The notes below the pieces were generated by a model. It was not told the origin of the DNA. It saw only the letters and a program-made list of their open reading frames with translations, and searched no databases. Positions 2,080 through 61,533 of a stretch of 64,000 nucleotides of DNA are shown piece by piece. The stretch is from NCBI RefSeq assembly GCF_003704095.1, contig NW_020845558.1:620001-684000 (forward strand). Reading direction: 5' to 3'. Made by a program: the position numbers and the translations under genes. The stretch comes from Pocillopora damicornis. Its lineage: Eukaryota. How positions within the stretch are numbered: position 1 is the first letter of the stretch; every line of letters begins with the position of its first letter.

Positions 2080-3478
2080 CTTCTTTATAAACTTGCCAAC
2101 CAGTATGAGGACTGTAAATAGAAAATGGAGTCACAGAACGGATGAGGGAGGCAAGACCACCAACTTTAGCCACCTCTATAGCGCCATATACTCGATAAGC
2201 CACTGTCTTTCCATAACTGATCCACTTCTCATTAAAAACCATAATTTTACCCTTTGCCTGCAGGGGAAAAGAAATGACATAATCTAGATATACCAGGGAA
2301 GTGAAAAAGTGCTATAGTTACCCCGTTTGCTTTACTTTTGGCATTTTTTTAGGGTAACTTGACATTGACTTTCACTGCAATCATCGAAAGATTTTTCTCT
2401 TAAAATAATTCAGAGGGAACAACCTGCTGGCCACCTCTTTAGCCCAGAATCATGACAAGCATTTTAGTTGGAGGATATGATCTTCCATGGCTTTTGTCAC
2501 TCTCATCACGAAGTTTGACAGTTCTTGTTGGTGGCACCAGGCTAATTTACATTGTCATTTTTTTGTGGAAGTTAAAGTGGCTTTAAGGTTTGAACGAGCT
2601 CGCTGCATTTCGAATAAGTCCCAGTGGGTTCTCGCTGAAAGTTTGTCTCTTCACCCAGTAATCTGAATGGGTACAAGCGAAACCCAACCAGATGCGGAAA
2701 GTAGGTTATTTGGAATGGACTAGCGTCTCATATAGAAAGAATTTTATTACTCCTTATTGCTTCAAACTAGTCCAGGAGTTCAGATATGAGGTTAGGCTGG
2801 AACGAGTGGGTAAGTCATAAATGAGAGCTGGCATGGAGAGACGTCACAACTCTCTTTTTTGAAGATCCTATAAGCATACTTCTTGTATTAGGGATATTAC
2901 TGAATTTGGGCAACTGAAACTATGAAGTACAATTGATCTGTTAGTGCCGTTCGATTTGTAAAGTACGTTATAGTGTACGATGTACCATATACCTCGAAGG
3001 CCTTGGCATGAAGTTCATCAAATGAGCCCACAACCAAAACTTCTGCAGTGATACCTTCAGGCAGAGTACCTACACTGCCTCCGAGGCCAAGCAGGGCAAT
3101 AGAGTGATTCCTGGGCGTAATCATTTTGGCTGATTCCTTACCACGCACCCAGTGGGTTACATTCACTTCTTCACCATGTACATTATCAAGCTTGTCCTCT
3201 TTCAGTTCATCGAGCATGTAATTTATAGCATACTCCAGATTGGCAGAGCCTGCAACTCGACTGCCAAATGTATCGACAAATTTTGCAAGTCTGTCGTAAA
3301 CTTGATGCTTTCCTGGTCCTTTAGTCAAGAAGTCCATTATTTTGTTCGCTTCAACTTGATGATCGGTTATCTCATTCCTTATCATGTTCAAGGCCTTATT
3401 AACACTCCTGGCCGACACTAATGTTAACTGTGGTAGGCAAAAACAAGCAAGACATAGGAAAACGGCCCTTGACTCCAT
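2080..3478 (-). CDS. CPQ: Carboxypeptidase Q (M28 family) paralogue A; only coding exons 1-2 are in the window
   Basis: Exon 3478-2993 (486 nt: signal peptide, YDRLAKFVDTFGSRVAGSANLE, HWVRGKESA, LGLGGSVGT). Exon 2257-2080 (178 nt: AKGKIMVFNEKWISYGKTV...SLIRSVTPFSIYSPHTG). GT-AG boundaries and exon lengths match paralogue B exactly. No exon 3 or 4 found in 1-2079. Confidence 0.9.
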
Positions 3479-6967: not shown

Positions 6968-9900
6968 CTAGTTTCGAGGCAGCATTTCATCCAGATTGGC
7001 AACAGTGTAAGCCACAACAGTCCACACTGCAGCACACAGGTCCATGGCATCAGGATCCTGTACAGTCATGGTGTCACCATTTGAGTGGTGGAAATAGAAG
7101 TACTTGCTGTTCTCATTCTTCAAGCTTCCACCTGGTACCCCATCTTGGATCCAGAAGGTGATATCCCCACCAACATGAGTAACTGTTAGGTTAGTGACAT
7201 TAATTGGCTTCAACAGCTCCATCACATCCTTCATAATGACTGCTGCTTTTTCACTGCCTTGAAACACTATCCCTAGAGGCTTGAAGGTTCCAATATCAGA
7301 CTCCATCACCAAGCTGAAATTTCCTGCACTATCTTTGTGTCGGTTGTAGTATTGTTCTGCTCCAAGAAGACCCACCTCTTCTCCTGTCCATAGCACCATC
7401 CGCATTGTGCGTTTTGGTTTGAGACCTAGTTGTCGAATAACTGACAGTGCTTGCCAGGAAATGAATGCACCACCTCCATCATCCATTGCACCTTGACCAA
7501 CATCCCAGCTGTCAAGATGGCCACTGACAAGAACCACCTGAAAAAAAAGAGGACATCACAAATAGATGTTAAATACAATGACAAGATTCAGACATAATTG
7601 ATAAATCAGGCTCTGGTTATTTGCAAGGTGGATATAGCTATTCATTGAATAAATATCTAACTGGTGGACAGTGAAGTCTGTTTACAATACAATACAATTT
7701 ATTTTATGTCGGTAACGTAGGGGGTGGTTACCCAATCCCCCGAGCCTAATGGCTCATGTTGAAAACGCTCGACAGTTAAAGTACAGATGTGTATATAAAT
7801 ATATGTACAAGTTAAATATATGTATATATGACGAAAAAAAGAAACACAAAAATATCACCTAGCCCCCTACCCCTAGTCCTAATCCTGAACCTCCCCTGAA
7901 ACCCTACCAGCCCTAATCACCTAACTTGTAGCCCTAACCCTGAAGCCTAATTACCAATTCATAACCCTACCCCTACAATTGTATACTAATACATTTATTA
8001 CACTTACAGCCAAGCATAGTTATGCAAGATAGGCCAGTCTTAAATTCTGCTAGAGTAGTTGCTGATTTAACTGAAGATGGTAGCTGGTTCCAGGAATGAG
8101 AGATAATACATGAAAAAGAGCTATGAATATGGCTAGAGGTATTTACAGGCTGGGAAACATTAAGAGCAGAGGAGCGCAAATTGTAGCGACAGACCCTAGG
8201 TGTGAAAAAATTAGAGATATACGAAGCTCCCTGTAGCCTGTATGCCTTGAAAAACATGATTAAAGACGCAGTAAGTCCTGTTTTGTTAACACTCATCCAC
8301 TGGATAGTGAATTATCCTTTGGATAGTATTAAGCACCCTTTGACCAATTGGGCCCTGGTAGCCATTAAGGAAAAAATGAGCTCCATGAAATGCAGATACC
8401 TGTTCTGGATGCACGCTGCCTTCTATCTCAGCAACTGTGTTCCTAGAAACTACTTGTGGCAAATTTTGGGCTTCCATTTTCAAATTAACTATTATTTTTG
8501 TTCCTCTAGCAGCCATCCTGGTCATCATTTCTGCATCCTCTATTGTAATACAGGCTGTCGGAATTTTCTTCACTCCTGTGACAAATGACATCAATATCCA
8601 TTGAATTGCCATGCCCTACCTTGCATTTTATAGGCCTGTTTCTAATAAAAGTTAGATGCTTATAAAATAATTTTCAACCTGTATACTGCAGGTATCTGTT
8701 TGGTACAACAATTAATGCTTCTTTCTACATTATTCAAAAGATTGTCCAATTATAAATTTCAAATTTTTAAAGTCAAGTGACCCAAAGGGTTTTCTTCCCA
8801 TTCACAGACTTTTTTCTCTTTTTCTTATAACTAATTCTTGATTTGGTCAAGGCCTAGATGAAGATGCTTAAAGTTCTGAGATTTTGCCTTAATTTGTGCT
8901 TTCAAAAAATTAGAATTTAATCTCGAAGAAATTCATCTGACTCTCTCATGGTCTCAATTCCAGCATTTCTTTAGCATTGCCCTGTAGGTGAGAGACACTG
9001 GAGTATGGTGAGACCACATGACCACTGCAAAAAAAGGCTAGTAGGCTAATTAAAAAAAAAAGGCTTATCATATCTTATCATTTTCATGGTTGGTTAAAAA
9101 GCAATAGGTAAAGATAGAGAGGTAATATACTTAAAGGTTTTGATAAGTTTACCTTTCTCATAATATTGCCAACCAGTATGAGGACTGTAGATAGAAAATG
9201 GTGTCACAGAACGGATGAGGGAGGCAAGGCCACCAACTTTAGCCACCTCTGCAGCCCCTTGTGTACGATAAACCACTGTCTTCCCATAACTAATCCATTT
9301 CTCATTTAAAACCACAATTTTACCTTTAGCCTTTATGGAGGAAAGTATATTGCAATAAAGATATCATTATGACAACTCGAGTAGAGAAAAGAGTTGTTTT
9401 TTTACACAATATATTCTTTTGTAATATATATTTACTAAACAATGTCTCTGCCTTAATCTTCGAATTTGTTCTCATGCAAATACCAGTGAGTAAAGTAAGT
9501 ATAGCATAGAAGTAGCATTTATGAATGATACAGTTTCCTATGACTTTTAAATAACTGAAACTTCTGATGCTAGAAGTTAACTGGGAGCCAGTAGGGGGCA
9601 AGGGGAAAAAGAAATTCAGGAAGGATATGACTTGCTGTTTGGCAAGGAAAGTGACAATTCATTATGATGAAACAACAGTAGCATTTGCCCCCAAATTCCA
9701 GATCTAGGTCCTAAAAAAGAGAGCCACCACTTTAATGGTAGGTCCTACCTGATTTCTTATGAAGTTTTGACTTAACTATGCAAAAACAGAAAAAAGGAGG
9801 TAAGTTCCTAAAGAAACTGCATCGTTGCATCAGTAGGGAGAGGAAGGGGGGATTATGAGTTAATTTGAATTTATCAACTGAGTTGATACTACATAGAAAG

Positions 9901-10399
9901 ATGTACCATATACCTCTGAGGCCTTGGCATGAAGTTCATCAAATGAGCTCACAACCAAAACTTCTGCAGTTATACCTTCAGGTGGAGTACCTACACTACC
10001 TCCAAGGCCAAGCAGGGCAATAGAGTGATTCCTGGGCATAATCATTTGGGCTGATTCCTTACCACGCACCCAGTGGGTTACATTCACTTCTTCACCATGT
10101 ACATTATCAAGTTTATCCTCTTTCAGTTCATCAAGCATGTAATCTATAGCATGTTCCAGATTGGCAGAGCCTGCAATTCGACTGCCAAATGTATCAACAA
10201 ACGTTGCAAGTCTATTGTAAACTTGATGCTTTCCTGGTCCTTTTGTTAAGAAGTCTATAATCTTGTTTGCATCAGCTTGATGATCTGCCATCTCGTTCCT
10301 TACCATGTTTAAAGCTTTGTTAACATCCCTGGCTGATTCTGACATTAATGACAGTGAGCAAGTCAGAACAACATGCAACCAAATAATCCTTAGCTCCAT
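6968..10399 (-). CDS. CPQ: Carboxypeptidase Q (plasma glutamate carboxypeptidase) paralogue B, complete, ~469 aa
   Basis: Exons 10399-9914, 9330-9153, 8575-8400, 7537-6968. All GT-AG with consistent phases (486+178+176+570 nt). M28 zinc-ligand and catalytic motifs intact: SGHLDSWD, AMDDGGG, GEEVG, MESDIG, FHHS. A splice acceptor 7 nt upstream of the ATG implies a non-coding first exon. Confidence 0.95.
7607..8357. mobile_element. Palindromic MITE split in two by the LINE insertion
   Basis: Left half 7607-7683 (CAGGCTCTGGTT...AAGGTGGATA...GTGGA) is a degenerate inverted copy of the right half 8277-8357 (TCCACTGGATAG...CACCCTTTGACCAATTGGGCCCTG). Confidence 0.6.
7684..8270 (-). mobile_element. 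5'-truncated L2/CR1-type LINE fragment in CPQ-B intron 3
   Basis: ORF 7973-8296(-) has RT C-terminal motifs (YNLRS...SSFS...WNQLPSSVKSATTLAEFK). It is followed by a 3' UTR and an AATAAA-(TTGTA)n tail at 7684-7703. Confidence 0.8.
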
Positions 10400-10500
10400 G
10401 TTAACCCTAAAATTGCACAAGAAAAAAAAAATTAAGAAAAATCTAGACATGACAGTGCAAACACTTCACCCTACGTTAATTCTGCGCAAATGCTAGCCAG

Positions 10501-14093: not shown

Positions 14094-17000
14094 ATGATGC
14101 AAGCAGCGGGACAGGTAGTTGGTAATGGTGCAGTAGAAAGGCGTATGAGCTCTGATCATATCAAGGTAAACCCGCACAGAAATTCAATTTTGGGGCAAAG
14201 TTGTCGTAGTTAAGAGCTTAATAAGAAAGTGATGAGCAAAGTGCCTTCCAAGCTTCACCGAGTTTTGTTAAATTAAGTAAACTTCAGGGTAAATTTAACT
14301 GCCAAGGCATATTTTGCAAGCTGTGAAATCTGTTTCCTAGAGATCTGTTGATTTGACGTAGCTCAGTGGCCGATACATTTCTGTTTCTTAATCTGTGTCC
14401 GCTCAGAATTATCAATTCAACTTATTATGAGCATTTGAATTATTTTTTTTGTTTGAAATTAGCCGTTTTTTTGGTTGTTCAGTTGGTATGTTAATTTTAA
14501 ATTTGAGCTTTTCCCAATCGATGAAATTGGTTTTGCTTGTCAAGGATGGAGGTGTCACATTTTGGAGCACAACTGAACGCGGAATTAAAGCAGAACTGCG
14601 GCTACAACATCATCCTTACGACACAGAATCATGGGGAGTACTAATAAGAGAGGCACAGGTAAAAACGGGATTTTTTTTTAAACAAATCAGCGCTAAAAAC
14701 TTATTGCAAAGATGCGAATTATTCATTGTTATTACATTAGCTGTAACCCAGATGTAGAACTGCCCGAAATTTTCTAATATTGAAGAAAAAGGCAAGGCTG
14801 ATAATGTAAAATCATTGCCAAACCAAGTTTTAGTTTTTGTAAGATTTAATTTGAAAATACGTATTTCGTGTAGTCATTAAACTACATGATTATGTATGCA
14901 AAATGGCTTCCTTTCAGAATTCTTGGAAAGTGCTAAAGAAATTAGATTGCTTCATTTGTGAGATTATTTTTTAATGGTATGGAATCTAAGTTAAGTGTTT
15001 CTAGTGTTTCTACTGTATAATTTTATTGATAAAGAACACGCCAATATTGACACAGAATTGTGCACGCGTCTGAATTTCTTCGACCTTTAAACTCGACAAA
15101 GAAGCTTTAAAGCTTTCGAAAGTTAGATTAGACAACTTTTAAAAGACTGAAATGTATCACCTTAATGTCACGTTTTCACCACCAAAAAGTTCAATAATAT
15201 ACCATGCAGGTTATCCACCAGTGTGGGTAATCTGTTGACTTTTTTTTCGCCGTATGCAATAATTGGCCGGTGCAGGTAATCGGCCGTGTGGGTAAATGGC
15301 TGGAAATTACAGTAATTACTCTTCAGGCAAAGAACTGGTAAACTTGGAAGAAGACATTGAGGAAACAGAAGCTGTGATTGATCATTCTACAAGAATTGGA
15401 AACACTGAATGATCAATGTCTTTACAGCAGACATTTTGAAGCTATTTTTTTGGCAGACAAATGCTTTTGTTGTCAAGAGCTGATTGGCCTACATAGGCAA
15501 GAAACTGGCAAAAGACACAGGCAGTTTTATTCCTTTCACTCACAGGTCTAACTAAAACACATAGACAGACATTCCTGCCACACAGTGAAAAGCTATGGTA
15601 AATTATAATCTGAGTACCCTGATAAATGATACTAAGATCAATTGAGTGTTTTCATAATACACATGTAAATCCTCTTTTCACTTGTGTGCGGTGACAGTTT
15701 TGAGATGATAGCTGAGGATTTGTTGTTGGGTCTTAAGGAATTATTTTTGGGATGGTGTCCTCCTTTGGCTTGTACTTTGCAGGTGTTCAAAGAATTTCAA
15801 ACTTGAGTTATTGTTTGTAATGAGGTGCTTTGCAATTTCCTTGAGAAATTTTGCCAGCTATTTTCTTTTGAAGATTTTGGTGTGACTTCACTCATGCATA
15901 TTCTGTGCAACACACCATAAGTAAATTACTGATGGTTAGAAACTAAATTGAAGAAAGCCTGAAAACATTGTCCACCTCTTTCTCAAAATGACATTAATTC
16001 TAACTCTGAAAAAGTTCACACTGTGTTTGCAAAAAAGTACAAAAGCATACCATACAAACAAACATATCTCTTTACATAAACAAATGAGACAACTCAATTG
16101 TGTGATTTAATGACTTACTAACTGACTGTGCTTGGGATTGTGTACAACCACGTTGAGTTTTTCCATAGATCTCTTGCCCACAGACTACTGGGCTAATAAG
16201 GTTTCCAAACAACTTCTATATATGAAAGTATGGAATATTTAAGAAATTAGAAAGTATATGACCTTACAAAACTGTTCATGGGAAGTCAAGAGATGGCTAA
16301 ATAAACAACACAGACATATTCACTGATTGATTTATGACATTCTCAGCCATCCAAACCCAGCCTGAAGTCAAACATTTTCTCAGTGTGAGAAACATGCCTT
16401 ATCATTTCCCTTTTTATTTTAATCATTATAAGAAGCCACACAACTTCAATAAACCTACTGAATGCAAGTTTTGAGGCAACAGTGTCTATGGGGATCTGAT
16501 CTCTTTTCCATATCAGTGACTGATATTAACCACTGACATTGATTTTCTGAGTCATGGTACTGCTGGGTAAAAAAATATTTTTTCAAAGAGAGGTTCAAAC
16601 CAAAGACTGAAAAAAAAAAACTTTTGAACATTTATATTTAAGCTGTAAGCTGCAATTTTAAAATGGTTAAAATTTAGAGCTTCAGTTCCCCTTTCAACTT
16701 TGAAATTTTATTGGTTTTTATCTTAAATACAAAAAAGTTCTTAAAAATAATTTTCTCAATTTGTTTGTTTAAAAAATTTTATCACTGTTTTTGCTGTTGA
16801 ATGTTAAAAGTCACTTTGGATTAATCAGTTCAATTCTTTTAAACTGTAGGTTCTTTTATTATTATTATTTTTAATTTTCTCATCATTAATTTCCATGTAT
16901 GTATCATTAGAACTGATAATACAACAGAGATGTTTGAGTTAATTCTGTGTTAAGAGCAAATATTTTTTCTGTTTTATTTGCTTTAGAATACTCCTTTGGA

Positions 17001-20000
17001 AACATCTAGAGTTCTGTGTGAAAAGCTTGTAAGACGATTCCCTAATGCTGGTCGTTACTGGAGATTATACATTGAGCAAGAGGTTTTTAGAATTTGTAGT
17101 TTCTTTAAGATTTGTTAGCTCTGAAAATAATTTTACTAGTCTCTTCTTACAAATTCAGATCTTGGTATCTGGTGCACTTGTGTCTATAAGTCCATTCTTA
17201 GTCTCTGCAGACCCTGTGATGTAGTGTTAACATATTGCACTGTGATTTTGAGCCTAATTTTTGGGCAACCAGAGATAACTTGTGTAAATTGCTAGTAATT
17301 TTGCCGCAAATTTAGGTGATTTTTTTGCCCAAAGAATTACTAGCAGTTTGTACAGGAACTCTAAGGAAATAGTGTCTGCTCATAGTGCAGGACAAAATTA
17401 TTTGACTAGGGTTACAATTGTGCAAAAGCTTGATTTATTTCATAAGATATATGATGTGACCATAAATAAGGGAGGTTAAAGGTAGGCACAAAAGGTCACC
17501 TAACTGTTGGCACAATTGCCACAGAATAAAGGTTCTTGGTTGAGTTCTCTATTTAAAGTGAAATGCTATGTTTGTTTGCTCTGTTTAAGAGCGAAATAAA
17601 TGGGCTTTTTCAATACTGTGTCCTTTTTCAGACTAAACAGAGATTTGACTCTCAAAAATGTTTGTGTTGTGTTTGCATTTGTGTGCAGTCTCTTTATTTG
17701 CCTCAAGTGTCATTTACTTAACGTAGTATCCTCTGGGGTTCTTTTTTTAGATATCTCAGTTGTTATTTCCGTATTTAAACCGTCCAAATTTCTCTTAATT
17801 TTAGAGTAGAATTTGTTTCTGAGACCATTTTAAAAATATTATAATTTTTTTTTTAAAGTATCCATATCAACCAAAGAAATATCACGTGCCACTTAAATGT
17901 AGTAAAACCATTTCCAGGGCTGTCCATAATATTGTAGCTGGTTCAGTGACAATAAGCACAAAATTTTACTCTCCACCAGGAGGATACTAAGGCATGGTCC
18001 AAAACTTGAGAGTACTTTGTTGACGGGATAAAAAGAAAAATTTTACCCCCTAAGAAACAAAACAAGCAAAACAAACAAAAATTTACAACTGAAGAAATAA
18101 TATTGCATTGTTTCTGTCCAGAGGTTAATCTGGTGGTCAAAAGTGTTGGTATAGTTTCCAGTTTGTGCCCATACATAAAATGTTCAATTGAACCCAGGTG
18201 ATCGTTACATATTGATATAGGTGGAGACAGTTTCCACTTCATTACTGCGCTTAGATGATCCGTCACAGTTGGCTTACAAAACCATCCTCTTGTGACTGTT
18301 CCTCTTTAAATACAGTTCACACCCCCAAGGACTATGGTTTGTTGAAAGGGCTCAATTTATTATCTTGTTCCTGTTCAGTCTTCTTCATTTTCTCCCTTTC
18401 CCCTGTTTGGTTTATTTTCCCCTTGTTTCTTAGAATCAATGAAGAGCCATGGGATATCAACCTTTTTCTCCCTGATTAGAGGATTTACAACCTGTTTGTG
18501 GATTAGAAAAGTAGAGTTTATGTTTGCAGGCATAACTAGTTTTGGCTGAGGGTTAAAATACTCTTGGAAGGGCACATAACAGGTTTATACTCTAGGACAT
18601 ATACTGTATTACAATTATCATCACTTTGGAGGACAATAAAATAAAAACTGAAGAAAAAATGACTACTAAACAGTCTGAAATCTCCATTTTAGCCTGCAAA
18701 ATGCAGCGCAGTGCCCTTCAAAGTGATAATAATTAGTTTAAAAGTACATAAGTTTCTCCTGGAATTCTGGCATACATGTCTTGCCCTAATTCAAGTTATG
18801 GTCTTTTTATCCTATGGAGGGAAGAAAGAAATTTCACATTGGTGACTTACAGTGATTTAAATTCATAGTTTCAAGTGTTGTGTCCACAGATGTAAAAGCA
18901 GCCTTGTAACTAGTGTTAGAAGGGGGGGTGCAGTGCCTAGCACAGGGTGAGGTCAGCTGTAAAAGAGAAAAGAAGCCAGTTGGCCATTTTAACCATCCTC
19001 CTTCACCATTTTCTGCTTTATTTAATGGTCTATTTCCTATATTTTCAATTCTTTTTTTCTTGATTGTCATGCCTTTGAAATCACTTTGTGTTAAGATTTT
19101 GAAGGTAGCATCTGTTGATCTGTTGAAATACTCAAGACTTGATAATTTAACCTCATGCTCTATCCTCCTCTTCCAACCACTCAACCTCAACTGCATCAGT
19201 TTTAAGACCTTTTTTTATTACCAACTTACTCAGCTTGGATGACTCCAACACCAAACAATTATTTATGGTACTGGAACCTCCCATAATGACAAACCCAAAT
19301 CAAGAAGTAAAATGTGTGAACTCTTAGGACTTTTTTTCCATTACCAATTTGACAAGCTTCTGATTTGTAATTAAGAAGGCAAATTCAGTTTTCTATTTTG
19401 GAAAGAGTTGAAAATGCAGAATATTGGGGTTATTAACTAGGATAATTACACTTTTCAAACATAATTATTAACCTAGACTGCTGTGTTTTTTAAAATCTTG
19501 ACTAATTTCAAGTTGGACAAATCTAAGTTGTTCCTCATCTTGCCCCCCTTCCCTCCATCAGGGGTATTTTTTTCCACTACTCATATAAGGGAGGGGGCTG
19601 TGATGGAATGGGAGACAGAGGTTACCCAAGTGGAAACAGATTCTTCCATATTGGTTTGTTGCTAAAAACCCCAATTCTTGCATGCTTAAAACAAATTATA
19701 ATGTTAATTTACCTCCTTGCTCCCTTTGCACAAATTGTGTGCAGTGGTGTGCTTGTAAAGCATATTGGCTACCTAGTAAATCTTAGCTCCATTTGAAGCC
19801 AAACTGTTATGTAAGAGAAGTGGAAATTAGTTGGTTGTAAGTTTGATACTCTTGCAGTGAAGAACTGATGCCCTTTTCCATGCCAAAATTTAAGGTGCCT
19901 CCAAACTTCACTTGAGCACTGTCACTTGTCTCTTCCTTGCCAAGAATAATGAAGAATAGTCCCCAAACAATGAAGGCTGAATATAAAAACAAAGTTTAAC

Positions 20001-23000
20001 TGTTGTTTGGAAAAACCTTCTTTTGAATCAGTTTTAATATAACCAAGGGTTTGATTTAAACATGGATTTGAGAAGTGTCAAGAGGGTTGATGGCTAACAG
20101 AAAAACATTTAATATTTACTTCAAACAATCCTTGACACTATTCCAAGAGATCCTTTGATTGTTTTAAACTGCAGCATATAATGGCTGAATATCTTGATTT
20201 TTAAGGATCAATCTGCATCAGTTCCTGTATTTTTCCCCTATCAAGGGTACTAGTGAGAAATGTATTTTGAAACCATTTTTTTATGTGCATGGGGCCTGTT
20301 TCTCGAAAGTCCTGGTGGTTTAACAGGCCTGAAACCATATTTTAAAATAAAAATTTAAAGAAAAGAGGAGCAGGTTCTAGCCCCCCAAGCAATACATTTT
20401 GTTTCTTTGGCTGAAAGTTTTATTGTACAATTTTCAAAGCTTTTGAAACCCCATTTGTGAATGAAGACAGAACAGCTATACAGACCCATTAAATAAGTTA
20501 CTGGGACCTTCAAGAAACAGGTCCCTGCTCTTAAAGCCAAATTGGTTTGGAACAAGATAAATTTGTCCATGTCAAACATCTGTAAAAGTCTTCAAATTAG
20601 CTCTTTGTGTCTATCAAAATTGGCAATAGGAAATGCATTGTGCCACTGTTAGGCATTTGTACTGTCCAAAGTATTCATAATTTGATTTTGGGTAAAAGAA
20701 TGTTACTCAAGTTTGGTTAGATCACTTAGTATCAATATGGAGATGTGCACATCTTATTTTGTCAAATTAGTTTAAGAATGTTTTGAGTGAAGTCTTCATG
20801 GTTGATTTTCTTTCAGATGAAACATAAGAACTATGAACAAGTAGAAAAGGTACTAAGATAATCATTTTTTGATAGACCTAACTGAGACAGGTTAATGTTC
20901 TTGGCTTTGGCCTTGAAAGAGTTAATATGATTTTCAGTTGAACAAGATGAAACGTAAGTTTGGTGACCACATTTTGACTATAAAATTGTGGTGTTGTCAC
21001 AGGCAACTGGCACCATTTCCAATGGCAACAAGCTGATTGACTTCTTTTGGCAGGCTTTTGAGACTTGGTTAACCATTGGAAATGAGCTAGGGCCAGAGGT
21101 TGCCTGCGACAACACCACTATTTTATGGTCAAAACCTTTGCCAAACCTTGTCCATGCCTTACTCAACTGGTAATCATAGTACTTTGTAGAGATCTGAAAT
21201 GCAAATCCCCCTTTTTCTTCTTAATTATCAGTTGTGGTTGATTCCAATGGCAGTGATAAATTTCTTTGTTCTACAACCTGTGAAATATGGGAAAACTTCA
21301 TTTTCATTTCACTTTACTCAGTCAACGCTAAATCTGCTTCGGGTTTCGATTACTGGGAGGATGTGGAAAGGGGCATTTAAGAACTTGAGGGAAGGGGGGC
21401 TTAACTTTTAAGTCTTCAACTAACTGATCAAGACAGTAGTTCTCCTTATAATGGTAATGCATTTTAAAGCAGACAAGTGATGAGAAAAAAGCCATTAGGA
21501 CAAAATATCAAATAGGGGATTTAGAACTAACATCGTGAGAATTTTTATGGTAGACAGTAAGGAGAACTACTAATGAGATCTTGGGAGTTAAAGGGTTAAA
21601 GGAGACCTCCACTGTTAGAACATATTGATAGAATAAAAAAAATAATCCTCACAGTTAAAATTTGATCCTTGCAGTAATGAACACTACTTGAGCAGTAGTG
21701 GAAAAAGGGCTTGAAAAAAAATTCAGGCCTGTATGGGATTTGAACCCAATTTAAAATTTGTCTGCACAAGTAGAAATGAATTGTTTACAGCAATAGAAAA
21801 TTGAAATAGATGACTTATTTTATTTGAAGCTGGAATGTTTTGTTCACCCCTATCCTGGATTGTATGGCATTTAATGGTGACCACTACAACTTGTGTTATC
21901 TCCTTGGTGCTTATGGAAATAAAAGAGCTACTTTTGATTATGATAAGACATGACATATGATATCATACAATCCATACTTGTGCCTAGCAAAAAATTCAAA
22001 CAAACTTTTAAGACAGCTTAAATTTGTTCAGTTTTTGTGCATTCTGTTAAGGGAACTTCATAATTCAAATCATTTTTGTAGTGGTAAACAACAATTTGTT
22101 CAGCAGTGGAGGCATCCATCTGGGACTATAAGATGGGTGATGTTGTATTGTATTCCTTTGTAAAGCTGTGTGTTGTGATGATTTCAACTGAGATTTTTGT
22201 TGGAAAGACACCATTATGTTGATGTATACCTTTGAAGTGTCAGTTACTTCTACCTCTATTGAGCCAGTTAGGAAAAAATGATTCTGTGAGATATTTCAAG
22301 TATCAATAATTGTTTGCATAGATAACTCAGTAAGCTGGCCTTTTCTTATTTATTACACCTGTTTTCTCTTGACTCTTGTTATTTCAGCTCTTCCAGAAAT
22401 GCTTGATCAAGGTGTTAAACATTGATCTCTGGAAGTGTTACCTGTCATATGTAAAGGAGACTAAAAGCTCTCTTCAAAATTTTAGGTAGGCATGCATTTC
22501 AATTTCATTAAAGAAATTTTTATTTGGTTGAAGCTAAAGCAAATAACCCTTTACACCATAACATCAGTAGCCATATTTCCCAAAACCCTTCTCTCCACTT
22601 TTCCTTTGGTACTGACATGAAGAGTTCATCTATCAATTAAAGCATCTTAGGTTTGTGATTAATTTCTTTATTCTCATGATCTTAATGAATAATTTAGCAG
22701 TATTACTGGAAGGAGAAGTTAGATGGAATCAACTGCTGAGATTCTATGGATTTAATTTAAATCCGTAGAACTTCTGCATTTGATTCCAAATAACTCTAAC
22801 CATTAGGAGCAGTCAGTTAGTGTTATATATGGAGAGTGATAGGTACTCAAAGAATGGGCAGAAATGATTTTAAATATCAAACAGGGAATTCAAAATAATT
22901 TTCATGTTCAATTTCTTTCCAAACAAGAAGGACTTGAGTTTTGGTGAAATTACGAAGAAAATCCAGGAAGAGTATTATTAAATTTACTTTAGAGCAAGAT

Positions 23001-38165: not shown

Positions 38166-41100
38166 TTACTCACAAGGAAAGAAGACTCGTTGAGCATAAG
38201 TAATCTGACTTCGACATAATGGGCACTCTTTACACATGGATGAACACTCCACACAACAAACCACATGGCCGCAGGGGCAGAAGGCAGTCGCAACCTCACT
38301 ATCCATGCAGATCTGGCAGATTCTGGCATCCTGTAGGTGTCGCACCATAACCTTGAGTTGATCTGGAGTCATGTTCTCCATGGACTCTCTCTCAACAAAG
38401 GCTCTCCGGCATTCACCCCTTGATGGTCCTGCTTCATCATATCTCTTGGTGCTGTAAAATCTCCGTTGAGAGAGAGGGGACTGGACTGGGCGGTACTCCG
38501 CTGACCCAGGAGATGAACGCAAACTTCCAGAGGTGGAACTTGCCATGTCAATCATGCGGCACGAATTGAGTTCACCCCACGCGTGACTGTAGGCTTGGCG
38601 ACGCGTGCGCTGCACGTCGAACAGGAAAATCCTACCAAACTCATTACGCGGTACAAACATGGAAAACAGCCGACCAGCTAGAGTCCTTGTACACTGATCA
38701 ATAACGGATCGTTTGACAGTGTTGCACTGGTAAAACGTATGGAACTCCGTAAAAGTCCGGAATAAAGCTACGGCATCGCTTTCGCACTTCATCTTGTAAG
38801 TGTCTCGCTGCGCCTGAGGTCCAGTTCCCCCGTGGACAACAGTAAATGAGCGATTGTTGTAGGATACAGTGGAGACATCTTCAAACGAAACCCTGCAACA
38901 CATGTCAAACGACACGCACAATTTTATTAAACATCTGTATCATTCACCGGCTTTACCAATTTGTCATATCTTCTTTGTGCCCTGAGAGACTTCGCCCTTA
39001 GGCCAAACCTTACTCACTTTACTACGCTAATCGTGTATATTGTTCAACAGTTTCCATTGTTCCGTTTGTTCCCTTTTTCGTTAACACGGTGAAGAATCCC
39101 ACGAGTTTACAGTTTAACAATTACACAGACAACATAGGATGTGAAAATGAATAGTATAAATATTCATATATCTAGGAAAACTCGGGAACAGTTTTCCTAA
39201 ACGTCAAAAAACGCTAACGGATAACACCTGTTATAAGGGTTCTAAAATGCCTTCAACCCACACAGGAAGACGAACCTTTTCTAGTAGAAAAATATTTTAA
39301 GAACAACAAATAAGGAAAAACAATAAATTCCCATCTGTTTTTTTATTTCAAGAGGAGGTTCTTAGAGGCAAAAGACATGATATTTTGAGTCTTCGATTGC
39401 GACATCAGAATTTAATATTTTAACGTGAGAAAAACCACACAATATTGCTTTGGAAAATCTAAAACAACAAAATAAAAGAAAAAACGGTAAACAAAGATAA
39501 TGGACGGAGTAGAAGATTGAGACGATGACAATAAGAAACTAGAACACAATATGGAACACTTTTTCTTTTTTATTTCCCTAATCATGGACATTTGATGGTA
39601 AATCTGTAAAGCCATGGTCTATAACCATTGCACCTGTCGTCTTAAATTTATAATTTCTGCAGAACTATATTCATTTCGCAGCACAAATGCAACGAATCAA
39701 ACGGGAGTCACCAATCTTTCCTCTTCCTGCCAATATCCAAAATTACATTCCCCCAAGTAACCGCGAGGCCCATTTCTACAAGTGCAAAAAGGTTAAAACC
39801 TTCTTGGCCATAGGACACGAAATAAAGCGAGTGCAACATGAACTGTTATATCTCGTCTACACTAATCCACTTAAATCTTCTGGATTGGTGGACTCGGGTC
39901 TCCTCTCTTTCCTGTTGTATTTAATATGTCTAATGTAAGTCTGGTAAACTTTACACGAACCAAAACGGCTAAAAAGTATTTAAAATATGGACCAACTCGG
40001 TATGTACCAAACCTTTCTGAAACGGGCTAAAAAGTTCAACACAGGCTTGTCATTTTGGTGCAAACGACGGAGGGAGCTTTTAGGAAACGATGACATCACA
40101 TCCGTCAAAAGAGTAAAAACGGAAAATAGCGTTTTCTAATTTATTCGTTTTGGTTCACAAGAAGTTACTCTGATGGCGTTTCCGAGTCTAATCGGAGAAC
40201 TATGGTCAGCAAAAATGAAGGTGAGGGGATTAAGACTGAACGTTTTAACTGGGCATTCGCACTTCAAAACGGGTCTTTTCACTAAGGGGGCACCGGGCCT
40301 TGCTAAAAACGACAGATGACTAACAACAGAGACAAGATCACTCTTGGAAGACATTTGCAATCAGTGATCGCGAGGCATGCCAGCCGCACACCACAGTTTA
40401 CAAATGAACGGATATTGAGCAGCGAAGGGAGAGTTATAACAAAATACCGCGGGTGCGCGCAATGACAGCCATGCTACATCAAGCAGCTGTGTTGAAATAT
40501 TATTATTATGAAGGCAAACAACGTTAGAGTGTGTCAAAACAATCGCTTGCGAAAATAGAACAAAAATTTATGTAAGTAAAATTTTAAAAAAAAAGCTGTG
40601 ATTAATAAAACTCTCAACGTTATTATTTACTTGCAGTTGATTTGACTAGTAGTTCGAAGGAGAAATTTTAATATCAGAGATGTAATCTGAGTCCGCTTCA
40701 CTCATATTTATTTGCAGAAATTGCATCTGCTTGTATAACGACACAGTTACTACTGTATGTCAACATCTTGTCGCAGTTGTTTTTTCTGAAGTCGAACTGT
40801 GCTATCGAATATCTGACATCCTGCTATTCTGTTCTGTTGAGAATTCTTTTCCTTGTTGTGTCGTCGTTGAAATTGTGTATTTTACTGAATGAGCTGCCGC
40901 AGAGAAGACAGAAACGCATTTAAATTAAATATATTGAAAGAGGAACAAATTTTTAGCGGACAATCTTGTGTTCTAAATTCCACAAAGCTATGTAAAAGTT
41001 GCTTTATTCAGAAAGCCTCAATACAAAAGAGGAAAACGGGTAGAATATCCCCATTAATGAAAAAGTCCTGTTTGCGGTTTTGACTTGAGAAATAAATTAT

Positions 41101-57847: not shown

Positions 57848-59666
57848 TCATGTTTTCCGAGTGGCCAAGAAAACAGCCATGGTTCCTAACAAAAGCACAA
57901 TACCAACTGTGTACCAGCTGGGTTCTGACAGGCGAAAATCCATCACAGCTCTCTGCAAAAAGGAAAATGCAAGATTACACAAAGTTCATTCTGACCTAAA
58001 ACAAACACTTTCTCTGTACAATCAATAACAAAATCTGGTTCAATTTACATATGGTTGCTGTTATAGGAAAATTTTATTCCCATGTCATGACCATAGGACC
58101 ATGAACAATTTGAATTCCAGGAGGATCCAATCCTGAAACCTTCATAATTAGAAACCATGGTAATGGCCTTGCTGACCTTAACGTATCCACAGCTCAGTAA
58201 TAGAGCACTGGTGCAAAGAATCCAAATTTCAATTGCCTCATGGAGAATTTTTTTCTTTGTCAACACTCACAACAAGACAAAACATCTCTCTCTACTGAGA
58301 CCTTCTTATTTCCCAGTCTGATGCTCTGTTGCTGCACTACAGAAAACTTGTTTGTAAGCAAACATTATTTATAGTAGGTGACTTCTACAGGACTCAGATT
58401 TTTTTGTCTCCCACTTCTAGTAAGCAATTAACACCTTCCTCAAAAACTTTTCGCATTTTTCCCTAGTTATTATTTCCAAGTCATTCCATTGATGCAACAC
58501 ATATTGCTGATGCAATATTTCTATAGAAACAATATTTTCAAGAAGCTTTCATTTTAACCCCTTTCCATCAAAAGTCACCCTACACAAACATTAGTAACTT
58601 TCTTTTAACCTGATACCTGATATAATTTCCTTGAAATGGATGTACTAAGTTTCAAATTGGCGCATTAATGAGCACTTTCTGAGCTGTCAAAATTTCGCTT
58701 AAAGTCAATGCCGGTCACTAAAAGACGCATCAAAAAGAAACTCGAAAAAAATAATCGAAAAATCTGATTCATCTGCACACACAATGAAACAAGTTTACAC
58801 ACTGATCAATGAAGCACACAACACATTATTATCAAACGACTACACGCATATTAGCGTGCATTTACACCCCAACAATCGATCGACAAGAGTCTTATTTAAA
58901 CAAGCAGATTAAGAAATAACAAGGAATTACGGATATTTCTAAACGAACTCAATCCATTGAGAAATAAACAATGAAGGGGATATCGAGCAGAGAGAAGGGT
59001 GAGATTATTCTAGACTTTTTACCAAAAGTCATTAGTTAGCTCCATACATCCCTCAATATCGAGTAACCGACATTTTACAGTGAATCTAACAATCAATCTT
59101 ACCCATCCTCCATGCTGAGCAATCCAGCGAGCGATCCGCTCTTTGAAGATAAAATCCACCACAAATCGTATGATTCTACGTAGAAAACTACCACTAAAAC
59201 CTCTGCGTATGACAGTCACGGCAATTTCGTAGCCAAAGCAAAGAAGAGCAACCACTCTTCCCCAGTTTATACCTGTACGAAACAACCTCCGAGCGACTGC
59301 GGCAAATGTCTCGTAGGCCGTTGCTGGCGTTAGGCTTAATGAGTCTATCATATCCTTGAATTGATCTTTGTATTTAGCATCTATTTCATCGCCTATCTCT
59401 CCGAGGCGTCTACCGATAACTGGTACATGCTGTGAAAATGGATGGATGTCATTGCAAGAACGCAATTCTTCCAGCGCGTCTGGACGTGCGCTGGCCGAAG
59501 GACTGTCCATTTCACCATGTTCTTCTCCTCTTTGTGTCTCATCCTGATAGCGTTGGAACATAAAATGTCTGAAAATCCCTTCAGTATCTTGGAATACAGT
59601 TCTTTCGTCCTCGTTAGGCGGAATATCCTGATTATTTTCACTAGAGTCTCCTCCACCTGAAGCCAT
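57848..59666 (-). CDS. BAK1: Bcl-2 family pro-apoptotic effector, BAK orthologue, 2 exons, ~222 aa
   Basis: Exon 59666-59103 contains QDTEGIFRHFMFQRYQ (BAK alpha1-like), BH3 IGRRLGEIGDEID, BH1 NWGRVVALLCFGY and BH2 WIAQHGGW, with the family-typical intron right after GGW. Exon 57952-57848 encodes RAVMDFRLSEPSWYTVGIVLLLGTMAVFLATRKT*, a tail anchor with a basic end. Confidence 0.92.
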
Positions 59667-61533
59667 TTTTCCCACACTACCAAATCTCGACGCTTTTGAA
59701 CTGACTGTACAGTACGCCAGCGGAAACTGCCAAACGTCCCGTTGACGATCCCGCTGTCCGGGACGAGCAAACAAGAGAGATTGGCGCGGTTTCGGCCACC
59801 CATGTAATGAAAATAGACATAAGTGACCTTCGCGTGAAATTCGCGTGCAATTCGCATTTTCATTATTCAATCTAAACTTATATAGGTAGTTGACGCAAGA
59901 GTGTAGCCGTGACGCTCTCTTCTATAAAAAAATCTAAGTAACGCAAAACAAGAACAAAGACAAAAAAGGACCAAAACAAACAAACAAACAAACAAATAAA
60001 CAAACACGTGAAAAATGTAACTTTCCGCTTCATTGTTCTTTAAAACCAAAATGAAGGCAATTACAGTTCTTGAACCTTTTTTTATCCTTTATCAGCGACA
60101 TTCTTGCTGAAAAAATTGACCATCAATCTACGAGATACATACCCTAATGCGGCGATCTGATCGGTGCGAGCAACATAACACTCTACACACTAACATAGTT
60201 ATTTTTTTTACATAAAAAAATAATAATAATAATAAATATTAAAAAAGGTGAGGCGGCCTCTGTTTTTCCCTAAACTTCGGAAAAAACTGTCTTCCCATTC
60301 GTCAGGGATTGTACCAAAAATTTTTCCCCGAGGGTAGTGAGTCCCTCGCAAGTAGTTTGGAATTAAATTCCATAATAAATCTAGTTCACTAATAAGAATG
60401 CCTCTCTCCCTTGAGCGTTACAGCGTAACTTTGGGAAAAACTTGGTCTCTCGTTTTCCGTAAACTGAGAGTAGAGTATGCCAATTAGCCTCTCGTGTTCC
60501 CTAAACTCGGAGAAATCTCTCCACCCCCCCCCCCTTACCGTTCCTTTTTGGCAGCATCAAAAACGTCATCACTTCCCGTGAAGGGTAGTAAGTCCTATAA
60601 CATCTGTTTGGAACTAAGTCCTACTCCTCCTCTCCCCCCACTCTTAGGTTAGCTCCTAGAGATCCTGGGAAGTGACCAGTCTTAGTGCTTGTTGTTTTAA
60701 TTTTGTTTAAAAAAAAAATAAAAACCTCGCTAAGCGCTGAGAAGCACGGAATATCATGAGAAGTTGGTCAAAAATTTTGTATACGTGACTATGCATAGCT
60801 TTGCTCTTAGTCATAGCTTGTGTGACAATTGTTTCTTTGTTAGAATTTGGTTGAAAGATGCGATTAGATAACTATAAAAATATTTCTCTTTTCTCTAGGA
60901 ACGAGGGAACTGTGCTTCCTTTCCTATCTCGTATTTCACTCAACTTTTGAGGATGTGTATTTAACCTTTAATGTAGGAAAGTGCGACTATTTATTTTAAA
61001 TTGTGACGTTTTGGAAATGACACAATTTATTTTAGAATACAGTTGTTAATTTTCGCCACCTGCTCGTCAAACATGACACAATGGTCAAAACCGTTAGCAA
61101 ATGTTTGCTGTTAACTCGTTAAATGCTGTGATGTCATTGGTTTAATATCATTCAAGGCTAGGAGCGACAACCGAGAAAGTCCTTTGTTTTTTTATTTTCG
61201 TTTTGAAAAGACTGCATTGAAGCTTGAAGAATTCTTGGGTGTTTTTCTTTTCTCGATTTAATGAAAGGCATTATAATGCCGGAGACAGTCATTAAGTACT
61301 CATGGGTTTTTGGTTCGAAACAAAGAGCTGAAAATTGCCTGCGGTGCGTTTTCGGTTCTGTTATTCTGGGGCTTTGATAGTTATCATAAATTTATGAGCT
61401 TCAAGTTTTCACCATGGCTACGACTGGTTTATCACAAGAAGTTACTCTCGGACATATATCACTTTTGCGGTGTAAAGATACAGTGCGGAAACGTGTCGAC
61501 GCGACTGTTTACCACTGAGCCGTTAAAGCAGGA

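Follow-up and report, generated by a model that had tools for sequence, protein, structure and literature searches.

Candidate intronic polyadenylation in intron 3 of a coral CstF-77 gene and its likeness to the vertebrate CSTF3 site

Does the CstF-77 gene of a coral carry the kind of intronic polyadenylation switch that is known from its vertebrate counterpart, CSTF3, and if so, how old might such a device be? The question is raised by a 64,000-nucleotide (nt) stretch of Pocillopora damicornis DNA (assembly GCF_003704095.1, contig NW_020845558.1, positions 620,001 to 684,000 of the forward strand), hereafter the window, to which all coordinates refer. It harbors a CstF-77 (CSTF3, suppressor of forked) ortholog on the + strand at approximately 14.0–33.1 kilobases (kb). 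The level of CstF-77 sets poly(A)-site choice genome-wide, and the mammalian CSTF3 intron-3 site is the textbook case of a 3′-processing factor that senses its own activity and cross-talks with U1; this vertebrate site was reportedly described by Pan in 2006. The original prediction, made from the letters of the window alone, held that intron 3 of the coral gene has the architecture of this switch, and all of the sequence features that it listed were found where it placed them. Our literature search found no report of CstF-77 intronic polyadenylation in cnidarians. Here we describe a weak donor and a poly(A) island, both conserved, and polyadenylated short transcripts of related species, on the strength of which the intronic poly(A) site is very probably real in corals.

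Intron 3 and its weak donor

The exon model was built with 26 conserved peptide blocks as anchors, followed by the choice of GT..AG junctions that preserve both frame and homology. The homology-anchored gene has 26 exons and 25 introns. Six of the exons, each searched singly, match the Pfam family PF05843 (Suf) collinearly, at profile positions 32–61, 73–99, 266–296, 297–325, 371–404, and 477–507. The best solved matches of P0014, a protein of a close relative that spans exons 1–3, are 6uro_E (human cleavage stimulation factor subunit 3, E = 3e-17) and 2ooe_A (mouse CstF-77). Judged by these collinear Suf/HAT-repeat matches and by the nearest solved structures, the gene is the CstF-77 ortholog.

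The features of the gene discussed below lie on the + strand. The coding part of exon 1 (14094–14165) contributes 24 residues and ends at the donor AAG|GTAAAC, and its N-terminus is collinear with those of the RNA-derived proteins P0014 and P0022–P0025. Exon 2 (14545–14658, 38 residues) matches RNA contigs L001–L014, in which it is joined straight to exon 3. Exon 3 (16987–17082) is 96 nt long, encodes 32 residues ending in LYIEQE, covers Suf profile positions 32–61, and was aligned to human 6uro_E.

Intron 3 (17083–20816) is 3734 nt long and, as had been predicted, the longest of the 25, at about ten times the gene's median of 379 nt; the next longest introns measure 2328, 1538, 1255, and 1169 nt. 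Across five genomic loci, that of the window and four of relatives, its length is 3734, 4307, 3659, 3656, and 4028 nt. Transposons were considered as the origin of this length and rejected, since the repetitive share is only about 240 nt. It consists of an interspersed repeat of about 235 nt at 20290–20530 (no strand assigned), present in at least 40 genome copies on both strands at 74–82% identity and lying outside the switch; apart from it the intron is single-copy at the search sensitivity used. No Rfam family was found in intron 3, the best E-values being 0.15 and 0.93, far short of gathering scores. The acceptor, ttgattttctttcag, is about average among the 25 on a crude pyrimidine score.

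The donor of this intron, GAG|GTTTTT (17080–17088), lacks a purine at +3, A at +4, and G at +5. It scores −0.3 bits, compared with 3.6–11.6 bits for the other 24 donors, on a generic metazoan matrix that serves only to rank this gene's 25 donors against one another. The donor agrees with 5 of the 9 consensus positions (median of the other donors, 6), and its U1 duplex energy is −4.2 kcal/mol versus a median of −7.5, intron 6 alone being weaker. The poor U1 match that had been proposed is thus borne out among all 25 donors, as the lowest by the matrix and the second lowest by duplex energy. T at +3 also occurs in two more donors, at 29007 and 32281 (AAG|GTTTGT and CAG|GTTGGT), both with G at +5, so that T at +3 by itself is not rare in the gene; T at +3, +4, and +5 together is found, within the gene, in the intron 3 donor only. 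All coral-like sequences that were retrieved, RNA contigs and genomic loci alike, have the nonamer GAG|GTTTTT unchanged.

A separate observation concerns exon 3 itself. At 17026–17034 it contains CTT|GTAAGA, an in-frame sequence that resembles a donor, lies 54 nt before the actual one, and scores about 5 bits better. It codes for L-V-R of the conserved KLVRRF, and splicing there would remove 18 codons. This exonic sequence might act as a landing site for U1.

Reading through the end of exon 3 adds 11 codons and then reaches TAG at 17116–17118, in agreement with the tail and stop that had been predicted. A short mRNA ending within the intron would measure about 0.9–1.0 kb in the window and hold a frame of 105 codons, 94 from exons 1–3 and 11 intronic.

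A conserved poly(A) island and short transcripts of relatives

The genomic loci of relatives were taken from European Nucleotide Archive (ENA) assemblies (L015, L017, and L018) and from a pattern scan of metagenome contigs of the Joint Genome Institute (JGI) and ENA (L032–L035). When the whole of intron 3 was compared by blastn with the introns of L015 and L017, only two conserved blocks were found, and the rest of the 3.7 kb did not align. The first block is the start of the intron, GTTTTTAGAATTTGTAGT... (17083–17118), of which the first 30 nt or so (17083–17115) are about 90% identical to L015 and L017 and which contains the read-through codons and the TAG stop. The second, at 17554–17719 and thus about 0.5 kb into the intron, is a poly(A) island with 67–80% identity to the genomic DNA of L015 and L017, and it is conserved in L018 and L032–L035 as well. 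Alignment of intron 3 across relatives was the check that the original prediction called for, and both the weak donor and the poly(A) signal at 17595 prove to be conserved in the coral-like loci.

From 5′ to 3′, the island consists of a possible hairpin, AATAAA at 17595, a U-rich stretch, ACTAAA at 17632, a distal cleavage site, and a GU-rich tract. The AATAAA hexamer (17595–17600) is present in the window, in L015, L017, L018, and L032–L035, and in every RNA contig that reaches this point. The variant hexamer ACTAAA (17632–17637) stands 16–21 nt before the distal cleavage site and is shared by the window, L015, L003, L005, and L032–L035. The GU-rich downstream element, TGTTTGTGTTGTGTTTGCATTTGTGTGCAG (17659–17690), is conserved in all genomic loci that cover it and is of the sequence type bound by CstF-64.

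The remaining motifs of the original prediction fared unequally. TGTA is present in the window at 17095, 17220, 17283, and 17349, and AATAAA at 17525 and 17595, as listed. The counts of these motifs in intron 3 as a whole are not above chance (AATAAA, 5 versus 3.2 expected; TGTA, 19 versus 24.8 expected, from shuffles), so the poly(A) site is judged real from conservation and from transcript ends in relatives, and for the second hexamer (17595) only. Of the two hexamers for which downstream GU/U-rich tracts had been claimed, that at 17595 is the conserved one and precedes the RNA ends of relatives. The first AATAAA (17525–17530) is absent at the aligned position in L001, L003, L005, and L015; it is found in no relative, was rejected as a signal, and is probably fortuitous. 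The UGUA motifs were likewise rejected as an upstream element, since they occur at or below chance frequency, 250–500 nt upstream of the conserved hexamer, and the 100 nt or so that precede 17595 contain no TGTA, either in the window or in L015. Conservation of the UGUA at 17095 is simply that of the donor-proximal block to which it belongs.

Just 5′ of the conserved hexamer, at 17578–17592, lies a possible small hairpin (GCTCT-GTTTA-AGAGC) with a stem of 4–5 base pairs (bp) ending 2–3 nt before AATAAA, which we propose with low confidence. It appears in the minimum-energy fold of six of seven coral-like sequences; the seventh, L001, nearly abolishes it (−0.8 kcal/mol). The fold is significant for the window only (z = −3.7), and covariation is weak, with two pairs that change on both sides, a result equaled by 37 of 500 shuffles. 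In the vertebrate alignment (Luo 2013, PMC3708835, Fig S1), an 8-bp stem (TTGTTGCA...TGCAACAA) with variable loops, unmentioned there, can be seen by eye right before ATTAAA.

Transcripts that end within the intron were found in related species. A protein word index was searched with the open-frame piece that contains exon 2, and the matches were proteins from Logan assemblies of public runs. Among these, five RNA-derived proteins of 97–123 residues consist of exons 1, 2, and 3 and then continue as ...LYIEQE-VF... to a nearby stop; the 11-residue tail of P0014 is identical to the read-through of the window. Because the N-termini of the five differ, they represent five different related species, designated here by letter. 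Their source contigs are 14 in number (L001–L014), come from 14 runs, and measure 905–1284 nt each. Compared with the window, L015, and L017, they lack introns 1 and 2, which identifies them as RNA, and they run unbroken from exon 3 into intron 3. Some carry remnants of Nextera or TruSeq adaptors (positions 1–21 and 886–905 of L001 and the ends of L008, L012, and L013), which can mimic or hide RNA ends. That at least 14 runs yielded contigs crossing the boundary of exon 3 and intron 3 without a break suggests, as judged from assembler behavior, that the short form is abundant.

Contigs with poly(A) tails were obtained from three of the five species. Measured from the hexamer that corresponds to AATAAA at 17595, the tails start 13 nt downstream in some and about 52 nt downstream in others. 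In species B, L003 carries 25 A after ...ACTAAACAGAGATTGACTCTC, and in species C, L005 carries 9 A after the same sequence (...GACTCTC), while L006 and L007 end exactly at the base where the tail of L005 starts. In species D, L008 and L010 bear 22–25 A beginning 13 nt after AATAAA, and L013, from species E, ends at the species D position with adaptor directly after it. For species C, genomic DNA is available in L035, which is 99.2–99.5% identical to L005–L007 and reads CTCAAACTGG (CTCAAA|CTGGTTG) where the RNA has CTCAAAAAAAAA; because the DNA of the same species has no A run at the tail, the species C tail was added and not templated. For the other species, too, the closest genomic sequences are free of A runs at the tail positions. 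The original prediction of a short polyadenylated intron-3 mRNA is therefore matched in related species, with exons 1–3 spliced.

Transferred to the window by homology, these ends predict a proximal cleavage zone at 17610–17614 (about 17612, from the tails of L008 and L010 and the end of L013) and a distal cleavage site, CTC/AAAAA, at 17653–17658 (from the tails of L003 and L005 and the ends of L006 and L007). Poly(A) ends had been expected at about 17545–17630; the proximal position falls within this range and the distal one just beyond it.

The short forms also indicate what is being conserved. The stop codon lies anywhere from 5 to 31 codons into the intron, and one inserted nucleotide in species D puts the read-through in another frame and leaves the nucleotide motif intact. 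A frame-shifting insertion with the motif kept, together with a variable stop, points to constraint on the RNA and not on the peptide.

Downstream of intron 3, exon 4 (20817–20849) follows the acceptor ...ttgattttctttcag, encodes 11 residues, and is found at 91–98% identity in L015, L017, and L032; exon 5 (22388–22485) encodes 32 residues and covers Suf profile positions 73–99. Upstream of the CstF-77 gene, on the − strand, two near-identical N-terminal exons and one Peptidase_M28 exon occupy 2897–3478, 6968–7537, and 9860–10450, an arrangement suggestive of tandem duplication of an M28 peptidase gene. An M28 neighbor adjoins CstF-77 in the relatives' loci L017 and L018 too, so this synteny is conserved. 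Two open frames on the − strand further downstream bear a resemblance by eye only, one at 38166–38921 to a protein with a C-terminal RING of IAP type, and one at 59019–59870 (...GINWGRVVALLCFGYE...) to a Bcl-2 family member. As for the source of the DNA, which had been called a probable cnidarian from sequence alone, the genome fits that description, with dozens of tandem GFP-like exon matches as in reef corals. There are 62 matches to the GFP-like family (PF01353), with large tandem arrays on contigs C1962, C2983, C2469, and C4221. The anemone toxin family PF00706 has no match in the genome, which together with the GFP-like arrays indicates a reef-building coral.

The vertebrate counterpart, feedback, and alternative readings

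The vertebrate system has been dissected experimentally. A weak 5′ splice site, a large intron, and a GU-rich element each control use of the vertebrate site (Luo 2013, PMC3708835); when the GU-rich element was deleted, the human site was used about 10-fold less, and CstF-77 knock-down or U1 inhibition shifted the isoform ratio of the human and mouse gene. In the published alignment (Luo 2013, PMC3708835, Fig S1), compared here by eye, vertebrate exon 3 ends ...TACATTGAAGCAGAG|GTTAAT (ACATTGAAGCAGAG|GT). This boundary, taken together with the protein alignment to human, falls at the same residue as in the coral, so that the intron position is identical. It is a phase 0 intron after the YIE[A/Q]E codon in both (coral LYIEQE|V, human LYIEAE(75)|I), which bears out the prediction of a human-type intron 3, and by this intron position the coral site is of the vertebrate type.

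The likeness goes beyond position. The vertebrate donor, too, starts with GAG|GTT (GTTAAT), with the rare T at +3; intron 3 is the largest intron of the gene in both; the short frame is 103 codons in human and a predicted 105 in the coral; and conservation is centered on the donor and the poly(A) site in both. There are also differences. The human intron is 33 kb long, whereas coral-like introns measure 3.7–4.3 kb; the vertebrate hexamer is AUUAAA, whereas the coral has AAUAAA plus ACUAAA; the hexamer stands about 225 nt from the donor in vertebrates and about 512 nt in the coral; and the coral, unlike vertebrates, has no conserved upstream UGUA. No sequence similarity is detectable between the vertebrate and coral islands. 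The response to the CstF-77 level and to U1 inhibition has been demonstrated for mammals only.

In the reading that we favor, intron 3 of coral CstF-77 would be a decision point at which the transcript is either spliced or polyadenylated. Slow recognition of GAG|GUUUUU by U1 would give the cleavage and polyadenylation machinery time to use the island about 0.5 kb downstream. This island would depend on its GU-rich element, a binding site of the CstF complex; since CstF-77 scaffolds that complex, use of the site could rise with CstF activity. More CstF would then mean more truncation and less full-length mRNA, a negative feedback as in vertebrates, and the short mRNA would be a dead-end product, not the source of a useful protein. 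Taken as a whole (conserved weak donor, used intronic poly(A) island, and feedback on CstF-77), we consider this statement reasonably probable.

Several points weigh against it. The transcript ends come from related species and not from the window's own, the contig of the closest relative (L001) is cut by adaptor one base before the hexamer, and the two cleavage positions differ between groups of species. By U1 duplex energy the donor is the second weakest rather than the weakest, and the matrix that puts it last is generic and confined in its ranking to the donors of this gene. The coral hexamer is the strong AAUAAA, unlike the suboptimal AUUAAA of vertebrates, and has no conserved UGUA near it. 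With about one-ninth the length of its human counterpart, the coral intron also offers a smaller kinetic window. Finally, the feedback on the CstF-77 level is something we infer, by vertebrate logic.

Three other readings of the data deserve consideration. That the short contigs are artefacts, whether unspliced pre-mRNA, products of internal priming at A runs in the genome, or chimeras created in assembly, is highly unlikely. This explanation draws on the adaptor remnants in L001, L008, L012, and L013, on the retention of intron 2 in L021, and on L020, which extends 160 nt beyond the hexamer without a tail. However, introns 1 and 2 are excised precisely, tails of up to 25 A occur at points where the genomic DNA, of the same species or the nearest at hand, reads just AAA and then CTGG, and independent contigs from different runs end at the same base. 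The ends lie 13 nt after AAUAAA or 16–19 nt after ACUAAA, just before a GU-rich tract, which is textbook poly(A)-site geometry. If the site is accepted as real, it could still serve a short N-terminal CstF-77 protein, with the first HAT repeats and a short tail, that has a function of its own and does not throttle the gene. In keeping with such a role, all short transcripts keep an open frame (97–123 codons, with a stop nearby), the translated first 30 bases of the intron are conserved, and a separate 142-residue RefSeq product of this kind exists in Octopus bimaculoides. The tail peptide itself is not conserved, however, being either a 23-residue form or VFEFALN, with the stop 5–31 codons in, and the species D insertion changes the frame while the nucleotide motif is kept. 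In human, no protein was detected from the 103-codon isoform, and the intron-encoded tail appeared to be destabilizing (Luo 2013, PMC3708835). We regard a dedicated short protein as quite improbable.

A weak donor might also leak constitutively, at a low fixed rate, with neither feedback nor homology to the vertebrate device, the resemblance having arisen by parallel evolution on a shared old intron. Intron positions are widely common to cnidarians and vertebrates, so that the same intron in both is no surprise. In addition, the coral and vertebrate islands are alike in motif types only and differ in the type of hexamer and in its distance from the donor. Luo 2013 (PMC3708835) describe the site as conserved across vertebrates, regard the fly case as convergent, and report none in C. 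elegans, a view of fly and vertebrate that favors independent origins. On the other hand, a leak without function would not preserve a weak donor, a long intron, and a 165-nt island while the other 3.5 kb has diverged too far to be aligned. Corals, two mollusc-like lineages, and nine vertebrates, moreover, have the GAG|GTT donor start in common, and the unbroken exon 3–intron contigs of at least 14 runs suggest, by the behavior of the assembler, an abundant short form. On this evidence a constitutive leak is unlikely.

Other phyla, other genes, and the origin of the device

A further word search, with the alignment of the short proteins as query, showed that many short N-terminal CstF-77 frames in other phyla read through the same boundary. 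Among them are the RefSeq product of Octopus bimaculoides already mentioned and a predicted protein of the clam Tegillarca granosa. The donor in the cephalopod contigs and in a mollusc-like contig is GAG|GTTTAT. These contigs (L022–L030) share the donor type and read 0.6–1.9 kb into the intron, and no clear poly(A) tails were found among them. In the cephalopod-like RNA contigs (L022–L029) the short frame has 123 residues, and it was seen in contigs of at least 24 runs. Two of them, L022 and L024, stop at a common point some 1.75 kb into the intron, which lies 15 nt downstream of CATAAA with a U/GU-rich stretch right behind it, and L023 continues past this point; cephalopods may thus have a distant intronic poly(A) site. 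The evidence from molluscs is suggestive only. The more distant contig L020, from a glass-sponge metatranscriptome (SRR29297744), shares the donor (GAG|GTTTTTGAA), resembles the coral-like contigs in the surroundings of its hexamer, and may derive either from the sponge itself or from some animal that lives on it.

The GAG|GTT donor shared by corals, molluscs, and vertebrates favors common ancestry, without proving it, and we put the prospect that the coral and vertebrate devices share ancestry at about even or a little short of that. A fuller and more tentative proposal, which we hold to be somewhat less than evenly balanced, is that a single ancestral circuit, made up of a weak GAG|GUU donor and a CstF-dependent truncating poly(A) site, descends from the last common ancestor of cnidarians and bilaterians and persists in corals, molluscs, and vertebrates, flies and nematodes having lost or relocated it. 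If true, this circuit would be among the oldest known autoregulatory RNA-processing loops in animals, and the view of a vertebrate feature with a convergent fly counterpart would be overturned. A pre-bilaterian origin is what we infer, as the original prediction did. In corals the intron is the same, the donor begins in the same unusual way, the poly(A) site is used, and donor and island are under strong purifying selection, so that a single pre-bilaterian origin of the loop becomes directly testable. At 3.7 kb versus 33 kb, the coral version is also much more compact and is suited to minigene work.

A precedent for truncation of the orthologous gene outside vertebrates is found in Drosophila, where a truncated polyadenylated intronic RNA of su(f) lowers full-length output. 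Luo 2013 (PMC3708835), citing Audibert and Simonelig 1998, places this site in intron 4 of su(f) and describes the truncated RNA as having no in-frame stop. The coral gene does not have these fly-type features, as its site is in intron 3 and TAG follows after 11 intronic codons.

The same logic also recurs in other genes. In mammals, U1 small nuclear ribonucleoprotein (snRNP) holds premature cleavage and polyadenylation in check, a process called telescripting, and PCF11, the gene of another 3′-end factor, is said to have an autoregulatory intronic poly(A) site, described in mammals. These are mammalian systems in other genes, and the coral case rests on comparison and on transcripts. Like coral CstF-77 as read here, however, they set U1 and the 5′ splice site against a nearby intronic poly(A) site, in such a way that the gene of a 3′-processing factor could sense the state of its own machinery.

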